Positions 1,230-63,694 of a stretch of 64,000 nucleotides of DNA are shown here, piece by piece. Origin of the DNA: Tubulanus polymorphus (Eukaryota; Animalia; Nemertea); contig NC_134031.1 in assembly GCF_964204645.1 (NCBI RefSeq), positions 14,123,807 through 14,187,806 of the forward strand, in the 5' to 3' direction. The notes under the pieces were generated by a model, which saw nothing but the letters and a program-made list of their open reading frames with translations, did not search any database and was not told the DNA's origin. The first letter of the stretch is position 1. The number at the start of each line of letters is the position of its first letter. Position numbers and translations under genes: made by a program.

Positions 1230-1894
1230 CATTATATAACTTTTTTTTAATTTTTCATCTATAATCCAACCAATTCTATGATGATACAGAATAATGCAAA
1301 ATAAAAATGTCTCCCTATAATTCCGTTTCCTCCTTTTATAGGAAGTAGCCGGGAGTATCAAAAAAGATACAGCGAGATCCCAGTTAACATGTGATGTCGG
1401 GCGTGTTGATGAGTCAGGATAACGACAAAGTCGGCTGTGGGTCGACCCGGGAAGCAGTGCCAACTTACCAAATACATTTTAAAAGTCTCAATTATGTTTT
1501 CTCGCACTAAAAAAACCAATATTCGGCAATGATTCAAATTCCAATAATTTAGAATGAAATATTGGTTCAATGTAAATGAATATATGCAAACGCTTTAAGT
1601 ACGTCGGTCCATCTGCGTAGTCGAGAACTTGCTTCACCGTCTGGTAGCGCCATCTGCACTCCACGCCGGCATCGATCACAAGAATCGCCATTTTGCTGCC
1701 TTTGTTGCCAATTTGAAAACTTCCATTCGTCGCTATTATCTATTATTTGTCGAAGTTATTTACATCACGACAGGTAAGATCAAAATACCATTTACTGTTT
1801 TAACGTAATTGTGTTGCACGTTGGCCAATAATTCGCAGTATTTCTGGTTTATTTCTATTTTATCTGCAATATTCAATAGAATCCCTTGCCGGTG

Positions 1895-3655
1895 ATGGCT
1901 TTTCCTTTCTTGAAGGCCAAGTCATATTGGACTAAATGGCGACACATTAAACGATCAGTCGGAAATCATTTGAGAGATATTGATTTTCAGAAAAGGCTAC
2001 ATACAGCAGATGATGAATCTGTAAATTTGAGGCATGGGCACGTGAATGATTGTATTACTATTAATGACAATGAAAGTGTTGGCAGGCCTTGTTCGAGTCA
2101 TGCAAACGAATCATCTGCTCCTAGACTGGGCTGTAATGATGGCAGAGAATGACTATGAGATGAATAATGATCCCATGAATCCATTGAATGATAGCTTTAG
2201 ACTAGAATCAGCTTTTTTTGAGCGATTTTCATCTGATGCGGAGTCTGAAACTGATAGCATTAAGCCAGGAACCAATAATGATGAAGCACTAAACGATTTG
2301 AATGAACCACTTAAAACAATGGGCATTGAATCACAATATATCGATGATTGCATTGACAAAAGCATCCAAATTTACCCAAAGACCCCAGGACATTACTGGA
2401 AACTCAAGTTACATATGATACAGGCTTTCATATGTGATGCCCCAGCAAGGGCATTTGTTAAATGTATTAAATCACACACTGGGTATTATGGTTGTGAAAA
2501 AATGCACAACCAAGGGAAAGTATTCCAGTCATCGGATGACATTTCCAAGTTTGAATGATCCATTGCGAAATGACTTCGATTTCATTCAAATGAAAGATAT
2601 AAATCATCATACTTCTATATCACCCCTTACTGAACTTGACCTTGGAATGGTGTCTGAATTTCCTTTAGACTACATGCATCTTGTGTGCTTAGGAGTAATG
2701 AAACAGCTCATTTCTACATGGGTTAAAGGACCCTTAGAAATTCGTATCGGTCGTAATACTATCATTGATATATCTGATAGATTACTCTCATTTTTAAGTT
2801 TTATCCCTTATGATTTCAATCGTAAGGGAAGGTCTATGAATGAACTAGCTTATTGGAAAGCCTCTGAGTATCGTCTTTTTTATTGTATACCAGAGTAGTT
2901 GCTCTACATCAACTAATACCGAGGAATTTTACAAAAATGTTCTCTTGCTGTCAACTAGTATAAACATTTTGTGCTGCCCAAGATTATGTATGAATCATGA
3001 TTTTATTAAATATGCACATGATCTTTTGGTGACGTTTGTGGAGCATTATTCAGAGCTGTATGCTCCCGATGTGATAGCATACAATGTTCATAATTTGATT
3101 CATTTGGCAGCAGATGTTTCAACATATGGACCTCTTGATAACTTCTCTGGATTTCCTTTTGAGAATTATTTAGGCAAGTTAAAACAGCAAATAAAAAATG
3201 CTCGTCTCCCGTTGCAGCAGCTTATTCGCCGTATGAGCGAAAGAGAAAACTCAGTAAGGAGATCTCTACCTTTCGGGCAACATTTCAATGGTCCATTGTC
3301 ATTGCGCTGCCTGGCATCCAATATCAAACAATATAAAAAGCTTAGACTTAATAATAGAACCATGGTCAAAGTAACTCAACCTGACAACTGTGTACTACTA
3401 AATGATGAAGTTGCTTTGGTGAGAAATATATTCACATACAGTGAGGGTCAAGAAGTCAAGATTTTGATCGAAAAATTTAGCTCATAAGAAAGTTTTTTTA
3501 CTTATCCAATGGACTCGATACTGTTAGGAATAAGAATGGTTTGCAGACCAAGTGGTCGACTATCTAGTATACCTATGACAGATATAACATCGAAGTTTGT
3601 ACTTCTTCCCTAAATGGACAGATTTATAGCCTTTCCCTTGTTAAATCAGAAATAA
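1895..3655 (+). pseudogene. EnSpm/CACTA-type transposase, frameshifted
   Basis: Motifs ICDAPARAFVKCIKSHTGYYGCEK, FPLDYMHLVCLGVMK, WKASEYR and YNVHNLIHL...GPLDNFSGFPFENYLG are spread over ORFs 2046-2558, 2434-2898 and 2945-3487. Confidence 0.85.
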
Positions 3656-4206
3656 CTTCTTGTAGTATGATTGATAAATACGTAGTGCAGGAAAAACTAT
3701 TTATATCCTGTTAGTTAAAACGCAATCGCTCTCAAACAGGGACTACCAGTATTAAACTTTCGAGTACAATTGATGACTATTTTAAATGATAAAACAAACT
3801 TCTCGCTGCATTTTTTGTTATACATTTCAATTTATAACAGTTCGTGTATCTATAGAAACAGCTAAATAATATGATAAATAAGTTTTGAGTTAATTTTTAA
3901 ATTCATTTTTCCGCCACCCTCGAATATCTATCAAAATTGTGGAGGTCCCGATAGTGGCAGATTTGCAACCTGGTTACATATGTTTAGTTAGTGTAGTACT
4001 ATATTATTTAAAGCAGGCTTCCAGTATTAATGACATTTTTCAGTAGTAAAGACATTATAGTATATTGTATTTGAATGGCTCTTATAAATTATTTTAAATT
4101 TTTGTGTGATCTCCATGGCCTGCTCTTTTTCAGTAATCTAAATTAATTATTAACTAGGTGCTAAAACGTCCCATTGGCTGCATATTGTCAGGTGGGTATG
4201 GGTATG

Positions 4207-5322: not shown

Positions 5323-7131
5323 TGAGTTTCTTAGTTGTCGAATTTGATGGTCCTGATGGTCTCGAAAGTTAAATTATTCCTGAATGCTAGTGCCTTCGGG
5401 ATTATGCAGGGAGTGAGAAAGAAAGATTTTGCTACTGGCCCCCGTATAAAGGGTTCAAAAAATCTAATAATGCAATACGGCAGCAGATACTCCCCGATAA
5501 TCGTGGACGGACTCAATTGCATTCTGGATGCTGGGCCGTTGCGATATGTAGTATCTGCATCAAATTGTTATTATCTTTTAGTGAATTGTAAAATATATTT
5601 TTCACCAAAATATCTCTACACTTGCAGACACGTATCAGGACGCTAGCAAAAAGCTTCAGAGGGCATTGGAGAGGTCTGATTTAAACAGCACGGATGATCA
5701 GTTACGCAAAACATCAAAACGGCCCATGAAGTGATTGTAATTGGTTAGAAGTTTCTCCGTTTCTTGTATAACTTGATGGAGGTGTAAATTTTCTATTAAC
5801 TATTTATTTCAGACCGAACCCAAAGTATAACAGGATTGCCACTATTAGTAGTAGTAGTGACGATTCGGATGATCATTCTGATGATATCCCTCCGCCGTCA
5901 AAGCGAATACGAATTCCAACAACCATACCATCATTCCCGTTGGCCAAAATCCATGTTCCAATCGCAAATTTCACCACAGGCATCTTCATCATCTGCTGAA
6001 AGAATCTCATCTACAGCCACACCATCTGTTAGAATACCACAGCTATCCATATCGTCCTTTTCATCTCCACCGCTACAACGTGTAACTACGTCTACTCCAC
6101 AGCCGTACCAACAATGCAACAGTGTACTCCGATAAGACATTCATCATCAGATGCAGCCAGTAAGTATTGTAATAAATTTCGAATACTTAAACTGGCATTA
6201 TTCCATTGGATTTGACCCTTTATTTGATGTGATTCATGATTTGAACATTCTGTTTCCAGAAGTGGTATCCAAATATCTATACAGTTAATAAGTAATTATG
6301 TCTTTAATGTATTAAACTTAATTTTCTTCAATCCTTCAGCTAAGAAGCGGCTTGAATTATTGGAGGAGCTGAAAGTAGATATAAAATTTTTGGGAAGAGT
6401 TATGTGTCGTGTCCTCCTCATCTCAACTTAGAAGAGCGAGATAATATTCTTCCCGAGGGATTCATCCTGCCAGCTGCAGATATCGAAGATGTACTCACCA
6501 ATGAGAGAATTCTCAGTGATGAGAAGAACATTACAGATCTGGTAGGTTTTGCCTGCGCATGTATTTTGTTGATTTACTTTCAACTGCAGTTAGATCAATG
6601 CATAAATGGGATGAAAAGCAGGTTAAATACTATCCCTCAAAAAAAAAAATTATACCTGGTCAACCGTCCTTTTACCTTTGTTCAAAATTGCTGATATTGT
6701 GTCCAATTTTTATAATTGCAGGCAGCATACATACGTACATATGGTGGAGCGGATGTGAAGGAAGTTGTACGGAGGATCATGGGAAACCTTTTTACCCCCC
6801 AACTTGCCCTCAAATTTAACTGGACTGGAAAAAACCAGAAGCATTGTTTTTCTGGGCTCAAATTGGTGAGGGCATTAAATGGTGAGAATGAAATGATTAA
6901 TTAACTAGGATTGAAAAGGTGGAAAAGGTGGAAAAGTTTCTGTCATTCTTGATATTTAATTTCATTATCCATATCGTTACAGAAGCAGTGAGGAAAAATC
7001 CACCGACTCGAAAAGTTGCTAATGATGAAATTGAGAAGGTTGTTCAGGGATGGTTTAAACATACGAAGGACAGGAATGGTGGCCGGGAACGAAGACGAAG
7101 ACGAGAAGAAGAACAAAATGAAAATCTGTAG
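5323..7131 (+). pseudogene. Multi-exon accessory gene of the EnSpm element (DUF4806-like)
   Basis: N-terminus MSFLVVEF...CYWPP with in-frame stops; Ser/Pro-rich middle; C-terminal GGADVKEVVRRIMGNLFT..LA.KFNWTG and IEKVVQGWFKHTKDRNGGR; GT-AG introns. Confidence 0.7.
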
Positions 7132-8789
7132 AGTCAATTTTATACGAGACAACTGGTGGGGGGCATAGTCCTACTGGGCTGTTGTGTTTACTTTTCATTA
7201 ATTTCTGTGGGTCATTTCCAGTGTATTTGGATAATGATACCTGAATATTTTCCATTTATTGCCTATACTACAGGCCCGTACCCAGAAGGATGTGAATGCA
7301 TCCCCACGAAAGAAAAGGTCCGCAATTTTAGTAATGAAATAAATTGTCCCTAAGAATCTAAAACTGGTTGATCTATTTGTTACTCTGCACCAGAGTCGTG
7401 CGACTGCAAATTGTCTTATTGTAAAATTTTTTATTCAGTGTTTTGATGTTTTCTGATCAATGTACTAAATATTGAAACCAAATGAGTGCTGACCTCGCAT
7501 CAAAACTTAGAGCCTTCGTCAAAATTAATTTTTTTACACCTAGAAATCAGAGAAGTTTGGCGGATCCGTAAACGAACTAACAAACCAATGGTGTTTTGAA
7601 TCATTTAAAAATGTGTTTCAGAAGTGTTAATTTGGCCATTCATAGTGTTTTTTATCTTAAAGTAGGGGTGCATAGTGTAAGAGTCAGAGTTGCTAATGAT
7701 ATCTGGTCTGTATTAATCTGTAGTTTGAAATTATTGTCAATTTTTTAAGGTTCTTTTATAATAATCATATACCAGTTGCATTTGCCGTGTACATACACAT
7801 GTATTTTAAAGCATATAATATTGTTTAATGGTCACAATTGTAAAGGGGATTTTGGGATGTAATGTTTTATACAAATATTCTGAAAATGTTTGATATTTTT
7901 TGAAGATTTTAATGTATATATATTAAATAAGTTCTACGTATTTAGAAAAATAAACACAAAATTAGGTCGCATTGACATAGTAATTTCTCGTTTTTTTTGC
8001 ATGGACATCTGAAGGTTGGATTTACGTCGGAATGCAGTCGTAACACATACGGATCAAAGGAGGTTGGAGGTCGGCAAAAGTATTTGTGGTACTTAGTAAT
8101 TCGGGATGTGGTCGGATTTACAGCGGAATTTCGATGTAAAGGTGGGATTAAGTCGGGTAATTGGTGGCAGGGGGTCGGAAATCACCGTCGGGCCACCGTA
8201 AATTGGATGAGCAAAAAGTCCGTCGGACCCATTGTCGTGTACGACTCCGGGCCGACTTCATGGCCGACTCAAAGCCGATGTAGGCACGACCAAAAATGTT
8301 AACTGGGATCCCTTCACCAGCCACATTATTAATACACCATTGTTCGGACCCAACCAAATACGGTTCCGTTTGTTCTTAAGATTTTATAAAAAGATTCTGA
8401 ATGTTTGCCAGATATTGCAGCAGAAGAACCGAGAAGAATTACTTTTACACCAGGCTGATTTATGGTCACCGCTGATAGATTAAAGCATCAAACACAACCT
8501 GCCTACTACATCATATACCATACCCATAACCACCAACGCATACAGGAAATCAACATTACAAACATTTTTTAGATAAAATCTTGCCGCGGATCGACAGGCA
8601 ATGCTGTCATCTTCTAACGATATCATAAACTATTCTGAATTCATTATCCAACTCATTCAGCCGTGCCGTGATATGTTAAAACCAAATCTAAAAATAAATT
8701 CAAGCACGACAGTGATGGACTATTACAAGAAGAATATTACAGCCACAATTCTGATATTGATAAACAATCCTATTGATAAGAATCTCTTT

Positions 8790-9222
8790 GAAATATATGT
8801 CTTCATTGATGGATCTATTAGATTGATAAAAAGGGAAAAAACCTAAAATTCTACATTATGTGCGCTTCCACAAAGATGTTGACGGAGAAAAGTATTATCG
8901 TGAGAAAATAATGCTTTTCAATCCATGGAGACAAGAAGAAGACTTACTGAAATCTTCTTCCTCTTATGAACAACATTATAATTCCAGGAAACCTAGAAAT
9001 TATATACAAGAAAATGTGTACAACAAACTGGATCTATCTATGGAGGCTGCCCAAAAAGAATTGATCAAGCTCCAGTCCAATGAAATTGGCATAGAGGTTG
9101 AAGATCAAGGCACATTCCCGAGCCCACCTTATATGTCTTATCATCCAAGTAAGACATACGTGCAGATATTGGCCCAAACCTTGGTCTTAAATCATCAAAT
9201 ACACAGGAAAATTTTATCATTT
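8790..9222 (+). pseudogene. Helitron/Helentron RepHel fragment (linker before the helicase)
   Basis: ILHYVRFHKDVDGEKYYREKIMLFNPWRQEEDLL motif; continues after an insertion at 10286 (MADAEYLRLMRNMNLRQKQV). Confidence 0.7.
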
Positions 9223-10285
9223 AAACAAGAGGCCCACGGGCCTTATACCTTCATGACGCAGTAGAAGAAAATGATTCAGTATTCAAAGTTTTACAGAATC
9301 ATTAACATTGTAACGATGTAACAAGTTTTAAAGCAGTTACGATGGTAGTGGAGATAATGTTCATTTTCTCTTAATATATCTTAGCATGAAAAGACTAGCC
9401 CATTTTAGCTGCCCCAAACATCACCCTACATGAAAAAATGCATAAAAAATTGTAAATCTAAGATGGAAGGTAGCTTTGGCCGCCATACTTTTCAACCTAC
9501 CAAAATTCTTACACTGATGAAAATGCATCAAGTATTGCGAGCCGTTTCCTGCTAGAAATTCAAGATGGCTGCCCTGGCGGCCATATTTGAAAGCCAATGA
9601 TCTAAATATACAATAGGCATGGACATCTTACCTACCCTGATCCTCACACAAAATTTTGGAATTTTCGGAAATCCATCAAGAATTGCGGACTGCATCACGC
9701 AAACAAGAAATTCAAGATGGCCACCCTACTGGCAGCCATATTTGATCACCAATGACCTTTTTTCAATAGGGGTGGATATCTCGCCTTACCCAAACCTCAT
9801 GCTAATTTTCAAAAAGATGCATTTCAGGCGAATTGCTGTCGAATTCAATTCAATTTCATACACACGGGGGCCACGAGAAACGATGGCAATCTAGCAATTT
9901 GATTTGGAAAATATCAGCACTATAGTTCAAAAGGGTTGATAAACCGCATCCGACTATCTAATCATTTAAAGGCTATGCCCTCATATGGAACATATATTCC
10001 CACCTCATATATTCCCACCTTATCTCAGGTGCATTCAGCCGCCATGATTCGCCCATTCAACCATAGAAACTTTCCCACTGTCTTACTATCGACATTTTCT
10101 AATAATTTAGCGAAATAATTAAAAAAGCAAAATTTCCCACTCTGCATTGATAAGGTCTAAGTATTTATTCATTTCAAAAATCTTCATCTGAACTCCCACC
10201 AACAAGTTATTAGTGGTGACTCTAAAATGACGTCATTGACTCACAACCATCTTATAACCTTCATGACTACATAATGAAGGTAAAA
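9223..10285 (-). mobile_element. Helentron-associated non-autonomous element (HINE/DINE-like)
   Basis: One end AACAAGAGGCCCACGGGCCT palindrome + subTIR TACCTTCATGAC; other end ACCTTCATGAC...ATGAAGGTAAAA hairpin/subTIR; inserted in an A/T run with no TSD. Confidence 0.75.
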
Positions 10286-10385
10286 ATGGCGGATGCTGAA
10301 TATTTAAGATTGATGCGTAATATGAACCTCAGACAAAAACAAGTAGTCCTCGTCCTGTTGCATCATTTTAAGAGTTCGGATAGTT
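10286..10385 (+). pseudogene. Continuation of Helentron RepHel (pre-PIF1 helicase segment)
   Basis: MADAEYLRLMRNMNLRQKQVVLVLLHHFKSSD resembles the segment just before Walker A in RepHel proteins. Confidence 0.55.
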
Positions 10386-11829: not shown

Positions 11830-12300
11830 GTTGAGCGTGGCTCTCAAAAACATGACGGATCGTGTTGGAAATCGCTAGACCGTTTTTTGAATGTGGCCAT
11901 CATACTACTGCGATTGTCTCAGTATTGAATTTGTGGAGAAACTCTACAAAAATGGGCGTCACCGCACCAGCACGATCACGTTGAATAGGTGAGGCTTTCC
12001 GGCAGCGATAAAAACTGCGTGCGTTTGAATCGTGGCGACATCGTTGCGTATCAAAAAGACAATGTCTTGGCCTTGAATAGGCAAGATAAACATCTTATTT
12101 TGGTCATCTCCACCCATAGCAACGATGATGAAAGCGAGGAAGTGAATGTGCGTGGCAGCAGGAGCCAATTAGTGAAACCACGGGTCGTTCTTGATTACAA
12201 CCACCATATGTCTGGCGTCGATCTGCATGATCAGTACAATTAGTATTATGAGAGTCCCTGTTAATCCGTCAATTGGTGGAAGCTAGTCACGAACTGTCCT
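11830..12300 (+). pseudogene. Degenerate piggyBac transposase fragment
   Basis: GHH.Y.D, NR.GFP and VKPRVVLDYNHHMSGVDLHDQY*...WWK motifs. Confidence 0.7.
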
Positions 12301-30334: not shown

Positions 30335-30338
30335 TTAA

Positions 30339-42557: not shown

Positions 42558-42660
42558 TTTAATAACATATTTTTCATTAAATTGATTTCATTTAATATAA
42601 TATTCATAAATTTGAATATTATTAGAGTAATAGGGAATGAGTTGTTTCATATCAAATGTT

Positions 42661-50200: not shown

Positions 50201-53200
50201 GCTTACTGGCAAATGTCTCTAACCCTGTGCGTACATATGATGCACCGGTGCATCACTAAATTTGGGGGTTCATAGGTCACATGAGAGTAACTAAAATATC
50301 CTCTTCATACCGTTGATTCATCTGAGAATCACTTGTAGTTCCTCTAGCTGTGCACAGATGGCAGCACCATACGACACTGTTCAGTTCTCACCGAACAAAG
50401 ATGGCAGCCTCCATGGAAGCTTTTGTTTCATGAAAATTGCTGTTCAATCAGACCCCAATATACCTACATAAAGGTAAGTAAGCCACTGAAACCAAGTTAT
50501 AATAAAAATATAACTACTATAGTATATATAGAATGACTTAAGAGTTATATATAAGCAAAAGTCACTTTTTAATAACTTGGATTATTTAACTGATCCACCA
50601 GTGCATCAAAGGTGTGTCGAGTGTCAGTGACACACAAGTCGGCGCCCACAAGTCTTGTCGAATTTTGCAGCGACTACTATGCAATTTTTTTTTACAGATG
50701 GAAAGAAAGAAAAGACTACAGGTGAATGATATCTTAGAAGCTGTACTGGCCTCAGACAGTGAATTTGAAGGCCTGTCAGATGAAGAGAATGATGAAGATG
50801 ATGCCTGGCCAGATGATCATGACGCTGTTTCTGTAGAATCTGATGATGATGATGAAACATGGAGTTCTTCTGACGATGAATTATTGTCTTCAAATGCGTC
50901 AAGTTCTAATATTCGCCAAAATATATGACTGTCGGTAAACAAAAAGAACATTTTAATTTTGAAGAACGCAGACCATTTGTGCCTCCTATATATACTGCGT
51001 TCAAACCAGTTCCAATAACTCCGCCACCAGATATAGAGATGACTCCCTATGAACGTTTCAAATCCTTAGTTACTGATGAAATGCTACAAAACATTGTTTC
51101 AGAAACCAACAAATACTCGGTTGAGAAAGATGGACAGTCTATGAAAATAACAGTCCATGAACTGGAGACATACATCGGTATCTATTTCTACATGGGATTG
51201 GTGAAAATGCCAGCAGTGACATCCTATTGGGAAGGTGGGACCAAGTATCCCAATATTTCTGATGAAATGGGGCGAAAATCGATTTACAAAGATTGCATCG
51301 AGGTTGCATTTTGTCGACAACAATAAAATAACCGACGATGAAAAGAATGATGATCATGTTTGGAAATAGAGACCTTGGATAAAAGCGTTACGCTCTAACT
51401 TTCGAGATATTTCTAGCGAAGAATATCAAAGCATTGATGAAATTATGGTTGCATTTAAGGGCCATAACCTTCTGCGACAATACATGCAGAAAAAACCGAA
51501 AAAGTGGCGATTTAAACTGTGGGGCCGCTGTGGTGTCTCTGGTATATGTCAGGATTTTGAAGTCTACCAAGGAAAAGGCACTGGCATTGATAATGAACTA
51601 GCTCCTGGCTGTGGTTTAGGGGGCAGTGTAGTCCTGCAGTTGTGCGCGGGTCTACCCCTAGGTCACCAGTACAAGATATTTAGCGATAATTATTTTACAA
51701 ATTTTGAAGTTGCTGTTCAAGTCAGAGAGCGGCGTATTGGACAGTTTCTAGGAACCATCCAGGCAAACAGAACACATAAAGCTCCATTAAAAACTGACAA
51801 GCAAATGGCGAAGCTTCCCTGCGGTTCAGTTAGTTCAGTTTATGACAAAGACTGACAGCTTGTGCTTGTGAGGTGGATGGACAATAAATGTGTCACACTG
51901 CTCTCAACATATGTAGGTGTCGAACCTACAGACACTGTGAATCGTTACGACAAGTCGACAAAAACCAAAATTGATGTGAAACATCCAGCCATTGTCCAAG
52001 TCTATAATGAAAACATGGGCGGATTGGACTTGCTTGATATGTTATGTACATTGTATAAATAGCTTAATCGAAGCAAACGGTGGTATCTTTACATATATTA
52101 CCACACCCTTACAATGGCTATGGTCAATTCATGGCTACTCTATCGGAGAGACTGCAGGCTACTAAATGTGAAAAAGACTATTCCACTGAAAGTGTTTCAA
52201 GCTGATGTTGCTGCAGCCCTCATAAAAGCTGGTAAAATCGCCCGTGTTGGACGGCCATCACTCGCAACTCTGAAGTCGCCACCTGCAAAAAGGAAGCGTG
52301 CAGTTCCAATACCAGTGAATGACGTACTCATTGGCCAGTGTATGATGAAAAGCGACTAAGATGCAGACATTGTACAAAGTATACGAACATTAAGTGCACA
52401 AAATGCCAAGTGGCTTTATGCCTTGTAAACACTAGGAATTGCTTTGTGGCATTCCATCAGAAATAAATTTCTATTACTGTAGATTATATTAGATATGATT
52501 TTTTGACTCATTTTAATTGAAAAAAAAACAAGCGAAGATAATTTTTAGTGGGTAAATTATTCAACCATAGTTACCAGTACATACCAATGATTCACCGGTG
52601 CATCAAATGTAAAAAGTAGGTCAACTGAGGTGATTTTTTAAAATTAAATTGTTTTTGGCATTCCCCTAGGATGTAAGTTTTCAAAGGTTATAATTTTTGC
52701 AACAGTAGAACTGGTGGTGGTATGCGTAGGGTTTTAACCTGAAATGTTTTGAAGATCTATACTACAGTATTTGTTACGTATTGATTTCACAAAAAAACTC
52801 ACCAAAAACTGCTGAGCACATGAATAGACAGCAAGCTGCACCGGAAACATTGGGCACAGAGGAAGAAGATGTTATAAAAAGCACCTATGTTGAACCCGAG
52901 GTAAAAAATAACAATGGGGATGTCTAATCGTTTGACAGAAGAAGAATTCATTCATTTGAACAAAACTTCGTCATTTGCTAAAATGGGTAAGAAAATACTG
53001 GAGAGTATGCGAGCGGATATCTTGACAGAACGTGCAAACGAGTACATTGAGGAAAACCCTACAGTATCAGAAACATTAATGAAGAAGATACAAAGTCATT
53101 ACATTCCGACTATACCATTATGGTCTAACATGCTGCATGGGGACCTAAGACGACACTTCCCAAACGGAAGTTTGCAGCGTGAATTCGTTCGCCTCACCGT

Positions 53201-53225
53201 ACCGTACCTAAAACACAAGGATTGA
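47279..53225 (+). pseudogene. PHD finger + USP (C19)-like peptidase + NOF/MULE-like transposase, degenerate, split by a piggyBac
   Basis: PHD YCYC...MVECDYC.KWYH..C...CSRC; Cys box GIENIKNTCWLISAIQAF; CQHC...LPKTL; His box SAVIVHRG...SGHYVTY...FGD; transposase-like IYYDLTGS, PLAIAEMIT, ISADRS, CCHLMK, IPLWSNML.GDL.RH. Confidence 0.7.
50223..52731 (+). mobile_element. piggyBac transposon (degenerate transposase 50698-52466)
   Basis: CCCTGTGCGTAC / GTATGCGTAGGG ends; SIDEIMVAFKG, FSDNYFT, YNENMGGLD, C-terminal Cys-rich domain; palindromic TGATGCACCGGTGCATCA-like internal repeats. Confidence 0.88.
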
Positions 53226-55509: not shown

Positions 55510-56480
55510 TCAAAGATGAGAATCTAAAACAGTAGACGCAAACTGCTGAGCTGAGTGGAGTTGAATTGGCTTATGATAATAAGTCGCAAAAGTCTTCTCA
55601 CATGACCATCCAACCGCGTTCATAATAGTCAAAATTGGAACAGTCTTAGCTGCAGCTGACGCCGACGCCGATCTCGTTGAATGGGCCAAATATCGGGCAA
55701 TATCAATACCAGCTGCTCGTAACACACTTTTGATCCGATTTGATAAAGTCTGGCTCGACGCACTTGTATAAGGCTTTCTAGTTATGATCAAGAAACCATC
55801 ATCTCCTTCGCATCGCAAATCTCGAGTTACATGAAGATATGTTTTAATACAACGAAAAACACAGATTCGTTCATCTGACGTATATTCATAAAACGAAATA
55901 GGTTCTATAACCTTTCCTGGCCGATCTTGTTTTTGCTTAATAAACGAAAAGCAAAATCATCGCAGATTTTCACATTCGAAATAGATAATTGTTGTAAAAC
56001 ATTATACCGCTTTCCCGATAATAATGACATAAGCATTAAGGTCTTTTTCGTCAGATTGGATAGACATAAGTCTTCTAGAGGTTCGATAGTCTTAAGAAAC
56101 CGTAAAACAATTCCAACATCCCACGTTTGATCATAACGAGGAGTAGGCGGTCTATTTTCAAACACCCCTTTCAATAATCTTGTAACGATAGGGTGCGAAC
56201 CAATGTTCACATGTGCTGACGCAAAGCAAAAAGTCGAAATCGCAGATCTTGCTGTGTTAATCGCACTATAAGAAAGCCCTCTTCTAAACAAAGAGCTTAA
56301 AATTTCAGCCAGCTATTCTGGCTCAGGAGAAGTAAAAATTGAAACCGTTATCAAATGCAAAATTAACCCATTGTTTATAATATACCTCATATTGGTCCCG
56401 CGTAGACTGTCGAAGCGACGAAATAATCAAATTAACAGTTTGTTGCGACAATCCTCTTGCCTTTAAATTCGACTTAAAAC
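55510..56480 (-). pseudogene. DIRS tyrosine recombinase (frameshifted)
   Basis: LSYSAINTARSAIS, HPIVTRLLKGVF..RPP.PRY..TWDV, HSTR...Y catalytic motifs. Confidence 0.85.
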
Positions 56481-56957
56481 TAAACACCCGTAAACTCATT
56501 CCGTCGTAAATCGCGTGACGTCGACTCAAGTCTTGCGGTAACTGCAACAGATCTGCTCTACAAGAAAGAATGAGATTCGATTTACTCATTGCCATCTATT
56601 TCGGAAACCAAGGTTGAGTTGGCCAATTTGGCTTAACAATAATACCATGTGAACCTTCTGATTTAATCTTAGAAAGACATTTTGCTATGAGATTAAATGG
56701 CGGAAAAGCATACGAAAACCAAACTTTCCATGACCATCCACGGCCAAAGCCTCTGGATCAGGGTTCCAAGACACAAAAGCCTTGACTTGTTTGTTGATAC
56801 GTGTAGCAAATAGATCTATCTCTGGTAATCCAAAATGAGATACTATGTATCGAAAATCTAATGGATTTAACATCCACTCTTTATTTGAAGCCTTTTCTCT
56901 AGAAATTAAATCTGCATCAAAATTGCTAACTCCACTAATATGAGTAGCTGTAGTCCA

Positions 56958-57505
56958 TGTAGTGTTCAATTGTGTAATTTGTAACAGTTAATTTTGCTCT
57001 AGCTAGTGGCGCCCTCATGCGGTATTTCTTTGTACTAAAAGTTAAGATGGTATCCATGTGATTGCAATTTTAAGACAGTTTTAGTTTTTACGTTTGTTTC
57101 TGCCAAATTTATGTTAGATCAATCCCAAAACGTCTGTAAGTACATAGCAGAATATCTTCTAAATGTGTATTAATATTCAGTAATCAGTAACTATAGTTTA
57201 ATGTGCTTTAAATCAGTCGCGAAAGTTTATTAAATTTAATTATTGAGTACGTGACTTCCGGTAAAGATTGAAGACATTTTTTTTTTTACTTTCGATATTA
57301 ATTTCCTATGTTGCAATATTCTTATAGTGTAATATTGTTTATTTTATTAGAAACCAACAACAACATATGTAAAGAACGACGACAAGATATGTCAAGAACA
57401 ACACAAGATTAAGTTGATTCAAGAATAAAAAGTCAAAGAGTTGCGTTTAAACCAAGAAGATTGTTGCGTTAAGTTTATTTGCAAGATTCAAGATTGGCAG
57501 TTACA
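56958..57505 (+). repeat. 5' LTR
   Basis: Differs from the 3' LTR at only 2 positions by eye. Confidence 0.95.
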
Positions 57506-57527
57506 AAAGTTTAGACGGAGACTAAAG

Positions 57528-60500
57528 ATGACGGAAGAACTGAAATTGAAGAAAACTACAAGTAAGACAATACAGGAAGAAGATGCTGACTCCACGATTA
57601 AGTACGGTGACCTCACCCGTGACCTTGATGCATCAGACTCAGTAAGTCAGTGTTCAAGTACATCCTCGATACGTTTAAAGCTGTTAGAAGAAGAAGCTAC
57701 CAGACGTAGCCTAGAAACTAAGTTGCTGAAAGCCAAAGAACAGCAACAACTTCAGCGAGAAAAATTACGTCTCGAACTTAAACATAAAGAACAGCTCCTA
57801 GAGCTCGATGCTGCTGCGGCATTGCTACAAATCGAATCAGAACTGGAACAGTCGGCTGTAAGGCAGCATGTATATAACGAAGCAGATTGTGACAACGACG
57901 GTGCGCCGAGATCATCGAAACCAATTCTTAGTTCCAGTCAAACCGAAACAAAGGTGCCGCCACTATCGGCCGAAGCACGTGAGTGGTATCCGCAGAATGT
58001 TAACTCAAGAAGTGACATGAGTAATATGATGTCTTGCGTAGAACAAATGTTTTCGCACCAAGAGCAGAGTAATCTTGAATTAACTCTTCCGAAACCAGAG
58101 ATGCCCACTTTCGATGGCAATCCGATCGATTATTACCCGTTCATCTCTGCATATGAAAATCTTATTGCATCGAAAACTCAAAATGCAAGTACACGTTTAT
58201 ATATGTTACAACAGTATACGAAGGGTGAAGCCAACGAAGTAGTGAAAGCATTCTTAACCAATGAACCAAATGTTGGTCTCGCCAATGCGCTCGACGCCTT
58301 AAAAAGGCATTATGGCCAGAATTACCGGATCGCAACTGCGTATATCGACAAGGTTACGAATGGCCCTCCAATACGTTCCGAAGACGGAGCAAGTCTCCAG
58401 AAGCTATCTGTGATATTAAATTCTTGTGCGAATGTCCTAAGTCAAATTGGTTACGTGAGTAAAATAGAGAATCCAGACTTTATGCGTCGTTTGATCTACA
58501 GACTGCCTTACGACATGCGAAAGAGATGGCGTACGAAAGCAGATTACATCACGAACCTTGAACGAGAAATAACAATATCAGACATCGCTAGTTTTATTGA
58601 ACATGAAGCACGAGTTCATACTCATCCGATATTCGGGGACATTAATGACTCGAAAGATAAATCGAAACAGAATCATCCGATAAAAAAGAAAACATTTACT
58701 ACGAACGCTGAAGAAATATACTCTAAGGACTCACGAAAGAACTGTGTTTATTGTAGTGAAAATCACTGGCTTGATCAGTGTAAAATATTTTTAGACAAAT
58801 CAGTTGAAGATCGTCGTAAGTTTGCTCGTGAAAAGGCGCTATGCTATAATTGTATGAAGATGAAGCACAGAGCTAGGACATGTCGTAGTCAAGCATCGTG
58901 TCGTACATGTGGCAAACGCCATCATAGTCTGCTGCATACAGAACAGCCTCCACCCCTGAAGAATGCTTTTGTAAGAAATCCAGTTCCTGGAACAGTAAAG
59001 CTACCTATAGTACCAGTTTTGCTGAAAGCTAATGATTGTCAGCTAACAACGTACGCGCTACTCGACAGCGGCTCAACAGTTTCATTCTGTACCGAGAGCT
59101 TGATAGATCGTCTTAAAATTCCTGCTGAGTATAAACGCTATCAGCTGAGCACTTTAGGAAGGGTTGAGACTGTTGAGTGTCGGGAAATATCAATCAATGT
59201 CTATAGTTTGGATGGGTGCAGTTCTCTTCAGCTGCGGAACATGCTATCTACACCGTCCTTACCAATCTCGAAGAATGACATGGTATGTCAAGACGAAGTC
59301 AACAAGTGGCCCCACCTGGATGGCTTTACAGTCTCAAACATCGACTCTCGTGTGGAGCTGCTGATAGGTAACGACAATCCAGCTGCATTGGAACCAATAG
59401 AAGAACGGAAACCGGCTAACAGCAACGGTCCATTTGCTGTACGTACACAGTTCGGCTGGACAGTATATGGTACAGCCCAGCCATATGAAGCGATCAACAA
59501 AGGTTCAGTTAATCTAGTCAAAGGCAGCGATGATGAACTTAATCAGAGATTCCGTGAATTCTGCAATCGTGAATTCAGCGACGCATTTACTGATGCTTCA
59601 GCTATGTCAGTGGATGACAAGAAAGCTCTCTCAGCGATCGAGAGTACAGCTGTTATGAGAGAAAATCATTACGAGGTAGGGTTACCATGGAAATACCCTC
59701 CTTCAGAATTGGTCAACAATAGAGTTATGGCCGAACACAGATTGAATCTACTGAAGGGTCGTCTCCTAAAAAATGAAGGATTACAAGCTAAGTATACAAA
59801 ATATATTGATCGTCTGTTGGAGCTCGGATTCGCCGAACAAGTCCCAGTTGAAGAAGTTGTATCCCCATATGTCTGGTACTTGCCTCACCACCCAGTATGG
59901 CATCCGCGGAAACCAGACAAGCTTAGAGTGGTATTCGACTGTTCAGCTAAATATCAGGGTAGATCACTAAACGACATGCTGTATCAGGGACCAGATCTCA
60001 CTAATTCCTTGATTGGTGTATTAAGTCGCTTCCGACAGGAACATGTCGCATTCATTGGAGACATAGAGAGCATGTTTCACCAGGTGAATGTTGAAGAACG
60101 AGATCGAAACGCGTTACGCTTCCTGTGGTGGCCAGACCACGATATTGAACAGCCACCTATTGACCACCGTATGAAGGTTCACATCTTCGGAGCAGCCTCA
60201 TCACCAAGTGTTTGTAACTATGCTCTACATAGGACAGCAGACGACAACAGAGCGGACTTCGCCGCAGATATAGTTGAAACGGTACATCGAAACTTTTACG
60301 TGGACGATTGTCTCAGGTCTGTGGAATCGTCTCAAGCTGCCACAACAATGAATAATCAGTTAAGCTGTCTATTGTCAAGAGGTGGATTTCGACTGACTAA
60401 GTTTGCTTCAAATTCGAGAGAAGTTGTCGAACATATTCCACCAGAAGAACGAGCACCCCCTCTGCGCGAATTGGGTGATCATGATCTGCCTGGTGACCGC

Positions 60501-62930
60501 GTCCTCGGCGTCTGGTGGGACATGGAAACTGATACGCTACGTTTTAAAGTGAATATTAAGCCACAACCTGTTACTCGACGTGGGATGTTGTCTGTAGTCA
60601 GTGCTATTTACGATCCGCTCGGACTTGCTTCGCCATTACTGCTACCAGCGAAGGTCATATCTCAACACCTGTGTAAGTCCGGACTAGGTTGGGATGACAA
60701 AGTACCCGCGAATTATGAACGTGAGTGGAGTAATTGGCTGCAAGACCTACCCCTGCTGGAAGAGTTCTCAGTCCCAAGATGTATTAGACCTGCTAATTTT
60801 GGTCGCGCGACTTCAACACAGCTTCATCATTTTGCAGACGCATCTGAGAAAGGATTCGGTGCAGTTTCATACGTACGTCTTATTAATGAAAATGGGCACA
60901 TACATTCTGCATTCTTAGCGTCAAGGTCGAGATTGGCCCCACTCAAGGTGATGTCAATACCACGTCTCGAGCTGTCTGCAGCAGTATTAGCAGTGAAACT
61001 AGATCGTATGCTTCGCGAAGAACTCGACCTGGATATCGACAACTCCACATTCTGGTCCGACAGCCAGGCTGTCTTGAAGTACATCAGCAATACGAGTAGT
61101 CGTTTCAAGGTATTCGTCGCAAACAGGTTATCAATTATCCAAGAAGGTTCAAATCCAGAGCAATGGAGATACATACCGGGGGTTTTAAACCCAGCCGATG
61201 AAGTCTCTCGAGGACTCACTGCTCAGCAATTCCTGCAAAATGACAGATGGGTTGCTGGGCCAGAGTTTCTACGAAAACAAGAAAGCGAATGGCCTCGACA
61301 AGAATTCGGAAATCACGATGTATCAATAGAAGATACAGAAGTTAAAAAGACATTTGTTTCAAAGGACTTGGAAATCAACTCATCGTCAACCAGCGTGCTG
61401 CTAAACATAGCAGATAGATCTTCAACGTGGCATAAGGCCAAAATTGTAGCGGCGTTGGTTATGCGTTTTATAGCAAGACTGAAACAATCTGTCTCTAAAC
61501 GGAAGGGACTAAATACTGCAGCTCAAGGTACCGCATACAAACATATAACTGTACCCGAATTGAGAGCTGCCGAAAGCGCCATTGTTGAAGCTGTACAGCG
61601 TAAAGTTTACAGTAAAGAAATGGAAAGACTGGAGCAGAACAGAACGACAGATAGACGTAAATATCGCAAATTCGTTAAGAAGACTAGTGTACTTCGGCGT
61701 CTAAACCCCATAGTGGTAAATGGACAGCTGAGAGTTGGTGGACGTCTGTCTTACTCAACAGTGAACGAGGACCAGAAGCATCCTTTAATCCTTCCACCAA
61801 ATGAACATGTAACTAAGCTTATTATCCGCCATTACCATCGTTATAGGGCTGGACATTCCGGTCGAAACCACGCTCTGTCACTTGTACGCGAGAAGTATTG
61901 GATAGTCCACGGTATGTCAGCAGTATATCGTATTCTGAGGGACTGCATTGACTGCAAAAAGAGACAAGGTCTTCCAGGTCAACAAATGATGGCGGACTTA
62001 CCACCTGAAAGGCTAGTCGCTGATAAACCGCCTTTTTCGAACGTCGGAATTGATTATTTTGGTCCGTATTTGGTAAAGATCGGCAGAAGTCAAGTAAAGC
62101 GATATGGCTGTATTTTTACCTGTATGTCATCGCGAGCAGTCCACTTGGAAATCGCTAATTCTATGGACACCTCTGCGTTCATAAATGCTCTGAGACGTTT
62201 CATAGCCAGGAGGGGCAACCCGGAGTGTATAAGAAGTGATAATGGAGACTTTACTGGAGCTCAACGAGAATTACGTGATTCAATAGCTGGGTGGAACCAG
62301 GAGAAAATCGAAGGATTCATGCTCCAGCGCGAAATTACGTGGGAATTTAATCCGCCAAGTGGATCGCACTTCGGTGGCGTATGGGAGCGTTGCATAAGAA
62401 CAGTTCGAAAGGTGCTTAATGCGTTGTTAAGCCAACAAGTGTTAAACGACGAGAATTTGTCCACTCTTATGTGCGAAGTGGAATCTGCAATTAACTCGCG
62501 TCCACTTACCGCGATTTCTGGAGATGTCAGTGACTTACAGGCCCTAACGCCTAATCATATCTTGCTCTTGCGCGCCGGAGGCACCATGCCGCCAGGTGTC
62601 TTTAAACCTACTGATATGTATATAAAGAGAAAGTGGCGTCAAGTACAGTATCTTGCCAATACGTTTTGGCGACATTGGGTTAAAGAGTATTTGCCTGTGT
62701 TACAGGAGCGCCAGCGATGGCAAAAGCCGAGCGTCAATTTTAGCGTTGGTGACATTGTTTTAGTGATGGACCACACACTCCCTAGGTGTTGTTGGCCGCT
62801 AGGCCGAGTTATTAGCGTACATCCGGGAAAGGACAATAAAGTCAGGGTTGTTACCTTGAAGACAAGGTCGCAAAATTCTCTTGTACGCCCAGTTGATAAA
62901 CTTGTGCACCTCGAGTGTGTACATAAGTAA
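57528..62930 (+). CDS. BEL/Pao Gag-Pol polyprotein (~1800 aa from ATG 57528)
   Basis: Gag with three Cys/His knuckles, protease LLDSGS, RT YLPHH/FYVDD, RNase H FADAS/IPRLEL, integrase GIDYFGP/SDNG/WER, DUF5641-like tail; open frame. Confidence 0.95.
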   Translation: MTEELKLKKTTSKTIQEEDADSTIKYGDLTRDLDASDSVSQCSSTSSIRLKLLEEEATRRSLETKLLKAKEQQQLQREKLRLELKHKEQLLELDAAAALLQIESELEQSAVRQHVYNEADCDNDGAPRSSKPILSSSQTETKVPPLSAEAREWYPQNVNSRSDMSNMMSCVEQMFSHQEQSNLELTLPKPEMPTFDGNPIDYYPFISAYENLIASKTQNASTRLYMLQQYTKGEANEVVKAFLTNEPNVGLANALDALKRHYGQNYRIATAYIDKVTNGPPIRSEDGASLQKLSVILNSCANVLSQIGYVSKIENPDFMRRLIYRLPYDMRKRWRTKADYITNLEREITISDIASFIEHEARVHTHPIFGDINDSKDKSKQNHPIKKKTFTTNAEEIYSKDSRKNCVYCSENHWLDQCKIFLDKSVEDRRKFAREKALCYNCMKMKHRARTCRSQASCRTCGKRHHSLLHTEQPPPLKNAFVRNPVPGTVKLPIVPVLLKANDCQLTTYALLDSGSTVSFCTESLIDRLKIPAEYKRYQLSTLGRVETVECREISINVYSLDGCSSLQLRNMLSTPSLPISKNDMVCQDEVNKWPHLDGFTVSNIDSRVELLIGNDNPAALEPIEERKPANSNGPFAVRTQFGWTVYGTAQPYEAINKGSVNLVKGSDDELNQRFREFCNREFSDAFTDASAMSVDDKKALSAIESTAVMRENHYEVGLPWKYPPSELVNNRVMAEHRLNLLKGRLLKNEGLQAKYTKYIDRLLELGFAEQVPVEEVVSPYVWYLPHHPVWHPRKPDKLRVVFDCSAKYQGRSLNDMLYQGPDLTNSLIGVLSRFRQEHVAFIGDIESMFHQVNVEERDRNALRFLWWPDHDIEQPPIDHRMKVHIFGAASSPSVCNYALHRTADDNRADFAADIVETVHRNFYVDDCLRSVESSQAATTMNNQLSCLLSRGGFRLTKFASNSREVVEHIPPEERAPPLRELGDHDLPGDRVLGVWWDMETDTLRFKVNIKPQPVTRRGMLSVVSAIYDPLGLASPLLLPAKVISQHLCKSGLGWDDKVPANYEREWSNWLQDLPLLEEFSVPRCIRPANFGRATSTQLHHFADASEKGFGAVSYVRLINENGHIHSAFLASRSRLAPLKVMSIPRLELSAAVLAVKLDRMLREELDLDIDNSTFWSDSQAVLKYISNTSSRFKVFVANRLSIIQEGSNPEQWRYIPGVLNPADEVSRGLTAQQFLQNDRWVAGPEFLRKQESEWPRQEFGNHDVSIEDTEVKKTFVSKDLEINSSSTSVLLNIADRSSTWHKAKIVAALVMRFIARLKQSVSKRKGLNTAAQGTAYKHITVPELRAAESAIVEAVQRKVYSKEMERLEQNRTTDRRKYRKFVKKTSVLRRLNPIVVNGQLRVGGRLSYSTVNEDQKHPLILPPNEHVTKLIIRHYHRYRAGHSGRNHALSLVREKYWIVHGMSAVYRILRDCIDCKKRQGLPGQQMMADLPPERLVADKPPFSNVGIDYFGPYLVKIGRSQVKRYGCIFTCMSSRAVHLEIANSMDTSAFINALRRFIARRGNPECIRSDNGDFTGAQRELRDSIAGWNQEKIEGFMLQREITWEFNPPSGSHFGGVWERCIRTVRKVLNALLSQQVLNDENLSTLMCEVESAINSRPLTAISGDVSDLQALTPNHILLLRAGGTMPPGVFKPTDMYIKRKWRQVQYLANTFWRHWVKEYLPVLQERQRWQKPSVNFSVGDIVLVMDHTLPRCCWPLGRVISVHPGKDNKVRVVTLKTRSQNSLVRPVDKLVHLECVHK

Positions 62931-63146
62931 CTTTGTAACAATTTGTATTAATTTGTAATTTTAAAGAGCGTAAACAGAATTTCTTAAGATAAGCCTATAG
63001 TGGTTTAATGTTAAGCTGGTTATGTGATGTTTTTTTTGATAATTTTGTAGTTTGTAGTACTAAGGTTTTTTGGTTTTATAAGCATAAGGCTAGTTTTTTA
63101 AATTTTTTGTTTTAAGCGCCCTACGTGCCCTTAAGGAGGTGGGTGA

Positions 63147-63694
63147 TGTAGTGTTCAATTGTGTAATTTGTAACAGTTAATTTTGCTCTAGCTAGTGGCG
63201 CCCTCATGCGGTATTTCTTTGTACTAAAAGTTAAGATGGTATCCATGTGATTGCAATTTTAAGACAGTTTTAGTTTTTACGTTTGTTTCTGCCAAATTTA
63301 TGTTAGATCAATCCCAAAACGTCTGTAAGTACATAGCAGAATATCTTCTAAATGTGTATTAATATTCAGTAATCAGTAACTATAGTTTAATGTGCTTTAA
63401 ATCAGTCGCGAAAGTTTATTAAATTTAATTATTGAGTACGTGACTTCCGGTAAAGATGGAAGACATTTTTTTTTTTACTTTCGATATTAATTTCCTATGT
63501 TGCAATATTCTTATAGTGTAATATTGTTTATTTTATTAGAAACCAACAACAACATATGTAAAGAACGACAACAAGATATGTCAAGAACAACACAAGATTA
63601 AGTTGATTCAAGAATAAAAAGTCAAAGAGTTGCGTTTAAACCAAGAAGATTGTTGCGTTAAGTTTATTTGCAAGATTCAAGATTGGCAGTTACA
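63147..63694 (+). repeat. 3' LTR
   Basis: Direct repeat of 56958-57505. Confidence 0.95.

Follow-up and report, generated by a model that had tools for sequence, protein, structure and literature searches.

Flamenco-like piRNA clusters extend over 227–1,085 kb, and only Gypsy elements account for their strand bias (van Lopik et al. 2023, PMC10643416). One-strand loci are also the common cluster type outside flies, accounting for 402 of the 457 piRNA clusters of Nematostella (PMC5731801). PIWI genes have been reported in other nemerteans (PMC7764242, PMC11114477). Our literature search turned up neither a map of piRNA clusters for any nemertean nor small-RNA data for the species studied here.

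Transposable elements (TEs) also accumulate in pericentromeric or heterochromatic nests, where genes are lacking, elements are nested, young copies lie beside decayed ones, the surroundings are TE-rich on a megabase scale, and orientation is expected to be random. Inside animal introns, an antisense bias of TEs is well established, and DNA transposons usually show little such bias.

Here we analyzed a 64-kb stretch of the genome of Tubulanus polymorphus (hereafter the window; contig C7, 14.12–14.19 Mb, of a 268-Mb genome; negative positions denote the left flank), which the first-pass annotation had proposed as a candidate one-strand, flamenco-like cluster. Like flamenco, the locus is gene-poor, holds fragments of many TE families with one orientation in excess, and lies away from contig ends, close to the border of a TE-rich zone of the chromosome. 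It differs in that the co-oriented block measures only ~80 kb, the bias reverses directly beyond its edges, and the bias carriers are piggyBac, MULE and other DNA transposons rather than Gypsy alone. Our analysis favors ordinary transposon accumulation with co-orientation by chance, a reading to which we assign a probability of about one half.

Transposable elements of the window

A Pfam scan and an ORF survey indicate that the window is a gene-free, nested pile of transposons (Table 1), and an Rfam search of its whole length returned no RNA families. The gene-free zone that includes it measures at least ~230 kb and lies within a TE-rich part of the chromosome of megabase scale. Genome-wide, TE matches concentrate in the central parts of contigs (on C7 at 6.8–14.9 Mb), and TE-dense windows are therefore plentiful. 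The traits of a TE nest are all present: absence of genes, nesting, many families and mixed ages, with decayed MULE, piggyBac and LINE fragments beside copies that are 99–100% identical to others in the genome. Two clear cases of nesting are piggyBac B inside the unclassified element X, and a BEL/Pao element inside a DIRS-like element.

Table 1. Features identified in the 64-kb window (positions count from its first nucleotide)
Feature	Position	Strand	Evidence
~746-bp very high-copy non-coding repeat	484..1229	.	>1,300 first-look candidates
EnSpm/CACTA-like transposase remnant	1880..3484	+	ORFs of 90, 170, 159 and 212 aa
ORF cluster, 98–112 aa, weak coding evidence	5335..6816	+	Own frame favored in 3/4 ORFs
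ORF cluster, 89–144 aa, weak coding evidence	7976..9261	+	Codon model favors plus
Old high-copy interspersed repeat	9224..10287	.	~1,000 candidates, 75–85% identity
piggyBac transposase C-terminal fragment	11989..12240	+	phmmer to piggyBac A ORF, E=6e-8; tblastn agrees
LINE reverse-transcriptase fragment (first-pass 'L2')	12536..13207	+	Homology to flank ORFs
piggyBac copy A, transposase with one frame break	13363..15049	+	DDE_Tnp_1_7
Unclassified young element X	15877..25774	+	741-bp terminal direct repeats
piggyBac copy B, recent, nested in X, same orientation	20256..22937	+	DDE_Tnp_1_7, E=4e-67
X minus-strand gene, P2RX7_C domain	23863..24839	-	P2RX7_C, E=2e-14
MULE fragment 1, internal deletion	30129..31804	+	Pfam Mutator
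MULE fragment 2	35981..37321	+	Mutator profile positions 97–303, E=2e-36
MULE fragment 3 (weak)	41351..41731	+	phmmer to MULE-1 N-terminal ORF, E=7e-5
Virus-like pieces, kin of left-flank Polinton-like virus	41820..42698	-	Flank ORF match
hAT-like zinc-finger ORF cluster	43022..44515	-	Atlas feature matches 0.88–0.91, lead only
piggyBac copy C, several frame breaks	47258..53222	+	PHD-finger and UCH/USP ORFs, then transposase, co-oriented
DIRS-like 3' part (tyrosine recombinase), cut by BEL	55513..56957	-	Phage_integrase, E=6e-6
BEL/Pao LTR retrotransposon, complete, young	56958..63694	+	One open 1,833-codon frame
DIRS-like 5' part	63700..64000, on to ~65378 beyond window	-	Continuity across BEL site

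Among the plus-oriented DNA transposons, piggyBac A matches DDE_Tnp_1_7 on both sides of its frame break (E=1e-36 at profile positions 1–169 and 9e-29 at 191–349). The recency of piggyBac B is evident from its absence in five other copies of X, which are uninterrupted across the junction 20255|22938; it sits in a TTAA target site and has the termini CCCTGGG...CCCAGGG. Copy C combines PHD (E=2e-5) and UCH (E=5e-13) domains with DDE_Tnp_1_7 matches at E=2e-14 and 1e-19, its C-terminal pieces reaching 52463. MULE fragment 1 covers Mutator profile positions 2–116 (E=8e-13) and 312–357 (E=3e-7), with a tblastn match between 30129–30308 and a MULE-OTU ORF in the flank, and it is matched by the C-terminal piece (37187–37321) of MULE fragment 2. 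In the EnSpm-like remnant, DUF4218 scored 22.9 bits (E=8e-5), under the Pfam cut-off of 27, and the segment 2418–3096 has three copies elsewhere that are 96% identical. The LINE fragment matches flank ORFs at E=2e-8 to 3e-22, one of which carries Pfam RVT_1.

Element X has terminal direct repeats 98.65% identical to each other, exon-like plus-strand ORFs at 16.4–20.2 kb, and a minus-strand gene of its own, part of which (24489–24839) gave a codon log-likelihood ratio of +17.9. At least six copies elsewhere are 98–100% identical, and a diverged collinear copy lies in the same orientation at -5666..-751. This other copy has the same minus-gene arrangement (at -1872..-751). We did not count the P2RX7_C ORF as a separate insertion because it is part of an otherwise plus-oriented element. 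The BEL/Pao element encodes Peptidase_A17 (E=5e-46), DUF1759, RVT_1, Integrase_H2C2, rve and DUF5641; its 548-bp LTRs are 99.6% identical, it is flanked by a 5-bp target duplication (GTCCA), and four full copies, 99–100% identical, are present in the genome.

Removal of BEL in silico yields a minus-strand ORF that spans the junction between the two parts of the DIRS-like element. The 5' part contains a 216-aa minus ORF (63746–64393) with a positive codon log-likelihood ratio, and a Pfam RT_RNaseH match on one minus ORF of the window was counted as further evidence for this element. Within the virus-like pieces, 42227–42487 matches a flank ORF (-24340..-23978) at E=2e-41, and the codon model prefers the own frames of the ORFs in these pieces. 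The Atlas matches of the hAT-like cluster are clusters with zf-BED or zf-C2H2_12, and the ORFs' own frame was best in all four; C2H2-type Pfam matches fall on one minus ORF of the window, position not located.

The remaining features are harder to classify. Pfam gave no match for the ORF cluster at 5335..6816, and the one at 7976..9261 has no match in Pfam, PDB or Atlas, its ORF at 8830–9261 having no credible relative in the Atlas search. PDB sequence searches with five unclassified ORFs returned nothing usable. Scored copies of the repeat at 484..1229, which may be one of the HINE-like elements of the first-pass annotation, are 92–97% identical, and the short minus ORFs in or beside it (776–1739) do not count as coding evidence. 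The same is true of the plus ORFs at 9601–10537 in the older repeat, for which the codon log-likelihood ratio is negative. For two minus ORFs coding was not demonstrable: 37241–37645 is unique in the genome, and the matches of 29751–30149 are weak and contain stops.

Strand bias within the window

We assessed strand bias by three independent measures, namely stop-to-stop ORFs, Pfam domains per strand and purine skew. Stop-to-stop ORFs of at least 150 aa number 16 on the plus strand and 1 on the minus strand, compared to shuffle expectations of 0.18 and 0.32, respectively. At a threshold of 100 aa there are 35 plus and 25 minus ORFs, with 4 and 5.7 expected. The Pfam scan took in every ORF of at least 60 aa, with each strand scanned separately. 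On the plus strand, it identified the piggyBac DDE domain in eight ORFs, Mutator in three, and the complete BEL/Pao polyprotein, along with UCH, PHD, THAP, TNP-like_RNaseH_N, DUF4218 and SWIM; on the minus strand, it found only P2RX7_C, RT_RNaseH, Phage_integrase and C2H2 fingers. Between 4 and 76 kb, each of the 8-kb bins had a positive purine skew.

We also applied a codon model, which called the correct strand in 85% of cross-validated pieces. For the sliding strand calls only bin means were used, because single 450-bp windows were too noisy. Coding-like ORF content filtered by this model is ~85–90% plus-stranded in the window and 100% plus-stranded at -83..-36 kb. The asymmetry among long ORFs comes largely from three young insertions, namely X, with 99.5–100% identity to its other copies, piggyBac B and BEL. 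These data show that the plus-strand excess of coding TE sequence in the window is real but modest.

How many independent events this excess represents is a separate matter. The supportable plus-strand insertions are the EnSpm-like remnant, one LINE reverse-transcriptase fragment, four piggyBac copies, three MULE fragments, X, BEL and two ORF clusters. With element calls partly subjective and several ORF clusters lacking a class, we count 10–13 independent plus insertions versus 3 minus insertions (the DIRS-like element, the hAT-like zinc finger and the virus-like piece). Automated clustering of same-strand ORFs was dropped as a counting method, because it fuses adjacent co-oriented elements.

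The first-pass annotation had counted 18 plus-strand elements against 3–4 on the minus strand. The excess itself is borne out, and the minus-strand list of DIRS, hAT zinc finger and virus-like pieces agrees with the elements found here; the figure of 18 was not reproduced. Four copies rather than five are supportable for piggyBac, and the statement that almost every family appears once is incorrect, with piggyBac present four times and MULE three times. A proposed Helentron could not be recovered: all 69 genome-wide candidates for the Helitron Rep domain were scored, and none lies within the window. Four Kolobok-type elements, a NOF-like element and a '33-kb relic' were not verifiable with Pfam.

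In a two-sided binomial test, 10:3 gives P = 0.09 and 13:3 gives P = 0.021; the earlier counts of 18:3 to 18:4 correspond to two-sided P values of 0.0015–0.0043. Even at these latter values, 3–8 of 1,947 windows examined across the genome would be expected to show such a bias by chance. The orientation bias is non-significant after allowing for ~2,000–4,000 windows, and its strength does not exceed what is expected by chance somewhere within 268 Mb.

Orientation in the flanks

The co-oriented block is ~80 kb long, with orientation reversing near -6 kb on the left and +76 kb on the right. To the left, -36..-6 kb is minus-oriented and contains a Polinton-like virus that carries PolB, along with three LINEs. 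The youngest neighbors are two LINEs with open ORFs of 696 and 428 aa, the second of which also has a 223-aa reverse-transcriptase ORF; both are oriented opposite to the window bias. The right flank is mixed in orientation, with 64–100 kb mostly minus. Taken alone, the flanks, which were not chosen for bias, gave 17:9 (P = 0.17), with runs equal to expectation. Followed into the surrounding DNA, as the first-pass annotation had suggested, the bias does not continue.

On a larger scale, three adjacent blocks can be delineated, each fairly pure in orientation: ~-83..-36 kb (plus), -36..-6 kb (minus) and -6..+76 kb (plus). Purine skew likewise keeps one sign across long stretches (-100..-36 kb, -36..-12 kb and 4..76 kb). 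Taken as a whole, -83..+76 kb gives 23:8 (P = 0.011) in 9 runs versus 12.9 expected (permutation P = 0.06). A GC/CpG scan at the block edges revealed no distinctive promoter-like island, and large segmental repeats, whether inverted or direct, were not found there.

Discussion

We consider it about an even bet that ordinary transposon accumulation, with co-orientation by chance, accounts for the locus. The window would be part of a gene-free zone in which transposons land and are tolerated, where many superfamilies have piled up through insertions some of which are very recent and some nested. The plus excess would then be a local fluctuation among ~16 independent insertions, with no dedicated orientation mechanism. 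The bias looks larger than it really is because a few young multi-ORF elements supply most of the long frames, and because plus-strand coding is easier to read by eye. Relative to other TE nests, where random orientation is expected, the window deviates at P ~0.02–0.09 before correction for multiple windows. Counting against chance are the 23:8 ratio over -83..+76 kb, the single-signed skew blocks, and the ~85–90% plus-strand share of coding-like content. Beyond the inventory, nesting, young ages, flank pattern and statistics, all of which are observed, we infer that no orientation-selecting process acts at the locus.

An alternative, which we regard as possible but unlikely, is that the locus is a one-strand piRNA source, with a putative minus-strand precursor running from ~+76 to ~-6 kb such that plus-oriented TEs would yield antisense piRNAs. 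Selection would keep insertions in the plus orientation. In this scheme the neighboring blocks would represent additional units whose directions alternate, with divergent transcription starting near -36 kb. The locus is indeed TE-dense, without genes and diverse in superfamilies; its orientation excess is seen in ORFs, Pfam domains and purine skew; its content of very young, low-copy active families (BEL with four copies, X, piggyBac B) is trap-like; and the genome contains at least six Piwi-domain loci, with AGO and PIWI clades counted together. Tens of kilobases and a possibly alternating direction would also suit the one-strand and bidirectional clusters of non-fly animals, such as those of Nematostella and the pachytene clusters of mammals, although those are defined by small-RNA mapping and the blocks described here by TE orientation. 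Against such a source, the bias shrinks to a marginal one when insertions are counted independently, the flanks do not show it, the two youngest neighboring LINEs point the other way, and the block edges have no conspicuous promoter-like island. The testable features argue against flamenco-likeness in particular: the block is ~80 kb, the bias is marginal, and Pfam detected no Gypsy/ERV element in the window, whose LTR class consists of one BEL/Pao (plus) and one DIRS-like element (minus), the bias being carried by piggyBac, MULE, EnSpm and X. The more specific proposal that the three blocks (plus, minus, plus) would be alternating one-strand precursor units with a divergent start at ~-36 kb, trapping mainly DNA transposons, strikes us as rather doubtful.

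ORF orientation and purine skew change sign block by block at -36, -6 and ~+76 kb, which could instead point to a regional cause, such as inversion of a larger domain that was once uniform, insertion whose orientation is biased by replication or chromatin, or local hopping of related DNA transposons; the three MULE fragments, which lie in an 11-kb interval, and the four piggyBac copies, which lie in one of 40 kb, are all plus-oriented. We judge this improbable: the block edges lack large segmental repeats, the bias is common to unrelated superfamilies with different insertion chemistries, and the divergence among piggyBac and among MULE copies, with no DNA-level match at E<1e-20, is too great for recent local copying. 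Less probable still is orientation selection by a host transcription unit. The block would occupy a giant intron of a minus-strand gene, as raised by the first-pass annotation, or of an lncRNA, or else the read-through tail of either, and sense-oriented TEs, which carry poly(A) and splice signals, would have been purged. Unrelated TEs co-oriented over tens of kilobases do resemble the antisense bias established for animal introns, and the closest host-like gene, which encodes a GH31 glycosidase (137–141 kb), is on the minus strand and transcribed towards the window. However, from -100 kb to +137 kb there are no host-type Pfam domains or single-copy ORFs; the large minus ORFs at 80–83 kb are multi-copy TE genes, and flank ORFs gave only TE domains apart from GH31 and a Kelch ORF (plus, not located). 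The absence of flanking host exons makes a minus-strand intron unlikely. Moreover, at least 80 kb would be an extreme intron length in a genome of 268 Mb, the region from GH31 to the window is mixed in orientation, and DNA transposons, not LINE or LTR elements, carry the bias. The bias might also be an artefact of ascertainment, plus-strand coding being more easily seen unaided and minus remnants under-counted. Minus ORFs reach 100 aa or more in 25 cases where ~6 are expected, and if every ORF cluster is counted as an element the ratio falls to 15:9 (P = 0.31). We find this explanation the hardest to credit of those considered, since the strand-blind measures concur (Pfam tallies, the 16:1 ratio of ORFs of at least 150 aa, and purine skew), most of the unexplained clusters of minus ORFs are antisense shadows by the codon model with its 85% accuracy, and two such clusters sit in non-coding high-copy repeats.

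With chance accumulation as the favored reading, the locus is a cautionary case: in a genome of 268 Mb, chance should yield several 64-kb windows with a P value of ~0.003, and hand counts of TE orientation inflate when multi-ORF or nested elements are counted. A genome-wide orientation scan is preferable to window-by-window claims. Should the blocks prove to be piRNA units, ribbon worms would gain their first mapped piRNA clusters, and a minus-strand precursor here would extend trap-type one-strand clusters to Nemertea. Orientation selection on DNA transposons would then provide a useful contrast to the Gypsy-specific bias of flamenco.

Strand bias and inventory of the window

The first-pass annotation had proposed a uni-strand, flamenco-like piRNA cluster, counting transposons (TEs) at 18:3 to 18:4 (+:–; two-sided p 0.0015–0.0043). 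Stop-to-stop open frames (ORFs) of ≥150 aa number 16 on the plus strand and 1 on the minus strand, compared to 0.18 and 0.32 expected from block-wise shuffles. For the Pfam scan we used all 138 plus and all 128 minus ORFs of ≥60 aa, aligned solely to allow scanning in one pass. The plus set matched piggyBac DDE (8 ORFs), Mutator (3) and the full BEL/Pao set, along with UCH, PHD, THAP, TNP-like_RNaseH_N, DUF4218 and SWIM, and the minus set only P2RX7_C, RT_RNaseH, Phage_integrase and C2H2 fingers; THAP, TNP-like_RNaseH_N, SWIM, zf-Tnp_2, RT_RNaseH and C2H2 fingers were scored at the level of the ORF set. Between 4 and 76 kb, every 8-kb bin has positive purine skew on the plus strand. The plus-strand excess is thus present by three measures that are blind to strand.

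All three minus-strand elements listed earlier (DIRS, hAT zinc finger, virus-like) were found, as were four of the five piggyBac copies. A Helentron had been reported, and the window holds no Helitron Rep domain (all 69 genome candidates scored); four Kolobok elements, a NOF-like element and a '33-kb relic' lack Pfam support. Nor does almost every family appear once, given four piggyBac and three MULE copies.

Elements of the window and flanks (negative positions, left flank; L012 and L013, left-flank pieces; L014 and L021, right-flank pieces)
Element	Position	Strand	Remark
LINE copy	-16728..-13354 (L012:3272-6646)	–	long open frames
LINE copy	-10330..-8394 (L012:9670-L013:1606)	–	long open frames
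Second X copy	-5666..-751 (L013)		diverged, collinear layout
Interspersed repeat, ~746 bp	484-1229		>1,300 candidate copies, 92-97% identity
EnSpm-like remnant	1880-3484	+	DUF4218 match, under Pfam cut-off
ORF cluster, kind unassigned	5.3-6.8 kb	+	
ORF cluster, kind unassigned	8.0-9.3 kb	+	
piggyBac fragment	11989-12240	+	
LINE reverse-transcriptase fragment	12536-13207	+	homology to RVT_1-bearing flank ORF
piggyBac A	13363-15049	+	
Element X (unclassified, young TE)	15877-25774	+	
piggyBac B	20256-22937	+	nested in X
P2RX7_C gene	23863-24839	–	part of X
MULE fragments (n=3)		+	30129-30308, directly upstream of fragment 1, matches ORF 71950-72762, neighbour of OTU ORFs; consistent with a Mutator element bearing an OTU domain
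Virus-like pieces	41820-42698	–	match gene of left-flank Polinton-like virus, E=2e-41
hAT-like zinc-finger cluster, candidate	43.0-44.5 kb	–	Atlas lead
PHD-UCH-piggyBac gene string	47258-53222	+	PHD-finger and UCH/USP deubiquitinase ORFs upstream of piggyBac transposase, same orientation, several frame breaks
DIRS-like element	55513-56957, resumes 63700-65378	–	
BEL/Pao LTR retrotransposon, complete	56958-63694	+	
OTU protease domain	71364-72762 (L014:7364-8762)	+	in ORFs
GH31 frame, 520 aa	139165-140724 (L021:5165-6724)	–	TIM-barrel and C-terminal domains

Age and nesting of elements

Element X is bounded by 741-bp terminal direct repeats (98.65% identical) and shares 99.5–100% identity with at least five other copies; at least six lie elsewhere at 98–100%. 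It carries exon-like plus ORFs and a two-ORF minus gene with a P2RX7_C domain, which we assign to X; the diverged copy is collinear with this arrangement. A domain of RT, integrase or DDE type was not located within X. At least five other X copies are continuous across 20255/22938, so piggyBac B, which has a TTAA site and CCCTGGG...CCCAGGG ends, inserted into X later. BEL is bounded by 548-bp LTRs of 99.6% identity and flanked by a duplicated GTCCA target; the genome has three further full copies (99–100% identity). When BEL and one target-duplication copy were removed in silico, a minus ORF spanned the junction, indicating that BEL is nested in the DIRS-like element in opposite orientation. 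Thus one nesting case is same-sense and one opposite.

Under-reading of the minus strand

Minus ORFs of ≥100 aa are in excess (25 seen, ∼6 expected), and we therefore tested for under-reading of the minus strand. A codon-usage model trained on Pfam- or homology-supported ORFs chose the correct strand in 85% of cases (leave-one-element-out, 100-codon pieces). It classed the minus clusters at 27.7–30.1, 37.7–38.9, 40.9–41.3 and 46.7–47.8 kb as antisense shadows. The ORFs of the DIRS-like element, the virus-like pieces, the zinc-finger cluster and X's own minus gene scored as genuine. Minus ORFs at 776–1739 lie within or adjoin the ∼746-bp repeat, and plus ORFs at 9.6–10.5 kb lie within a second high-copy repeat; both were accordingly discounted as coding evidence. 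Together, model and repeat filter leave 10–13 insertions with coding evidence on the plus strand and 3 on the minus strand (two-sided p 0.092–0.021).

Orientation in the flanks

We compared 100 kb on either side of the window, where ORF clusters, Pfam matches and purine skew all show orientation changing block by block. The block at −83 to −36 kb is plus-oriented, with two LINEs, a BEL, a piggyBac, a DUF7869 element and clusters of unassigned kind; the next, at −36 to −6 kb, is minus-oriented, with three LINEs (two with 428–696-aa open frames) and a Polinton-like virus with PolB. The stretch from −6 to +76 kb is plus-oriented; further right, orientation ranges from mixed to minus. At 80–83 kb a minus ORF of 454 aa is multi-copy, hence a TE gene. 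One of the long-frame minus LINEs has a 696-aa ORF (endonuclease and reverse transcriptase) and a 428-aa ORF (coiled coil), the other ORFs of 428 and 223 aa; both are probably recent insertions.

The flanks alone, unselected for bias, gave 17:9 (p 0.17), with 13 runs versus 12.8 expected. The range −83 to +76 kb, picked post hoc, gave 23:8 (p 0.011), with 9 runs versus 12.9 (permutation p 0.06).

Origin of the co-orientation

Ordinary TE accumulation, with co-orientation by chance, is our leading reading, at a probability of about one half; at the first-pass annotation's own p, 3–8 such windows are expected by chance among the 1,947 windows read, of ∼4,184 in the genome. Flamenco-like clusters, defined in 100-kb windows, span 227–1,085 kb and have a bias 'driven exclusively by Gypsy elements' (PMC10643416). 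In contrast, the block here measures only ∼80 kb and is without a Gypsy element, its bias being carried by DNA transposons; it differs from flamenco-like clusters on these two tested features. Less is claimed by a one-strand piRNA source of generic type, a possible but less probable reading. One-strand clusters dominate in non-fly animals, e.g. 402/457 in Nematostella (PMC5731801), PIWI genes are present in nemerteans (PMC7764242, PMC11114477), at least six Piwi-domain loci occur in this genome, and some copies in the block come from families that are very young. These points are not evidence of piRNA production, and the block is only tentatively a putative piRNA source.

A regional structural or mechanistic cause of co-orientation appears unlikely. 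We give still less weight to a host transcript selecting TE orientation, raised earlier as a minus-strand intron: no flanking host exon was found from −100 to +137 kb. The first host-like gene, at 137–141 kb on the minus strand, encodes a GH31 glycosidase; its 520-aa frame is probably the closest host gene and reads towards the window. A pure artefact of ascertainment is the least credible; the claimed 18 plus-strand elements were inflated, but the bias itself stands. We thus rank chance co-orientation ahead of a piRNA source, followed by regional cause, host transcript and artefact.

Genomic setting

The window has a GC content of 35–45%, and an Rfam scan of its whole length found no family. 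CpG observed/expected is 0.92 over the TE-dense 264-kb region (−100000..164000), with no sign of the depletion expected under heavy germline methylation of TEs. Of the young non-autonomous elements nearby, the ∼746-bp repeat is probably the commonest. The assembly comprises 268 Mb in 77 contigs, and the window occupies 14123807–14187806 on the plus strand of contig C7 (21.6 Mb). Genome-wide, TE matches of six unrelated queries lie nearly all in central or one-sided parts of large contigs, on C7 at 6.8–14.9 Mb. This distribution suggests megabase-scale TE-rich domains in the genome, with the window near the right edge of the domain on its contig.
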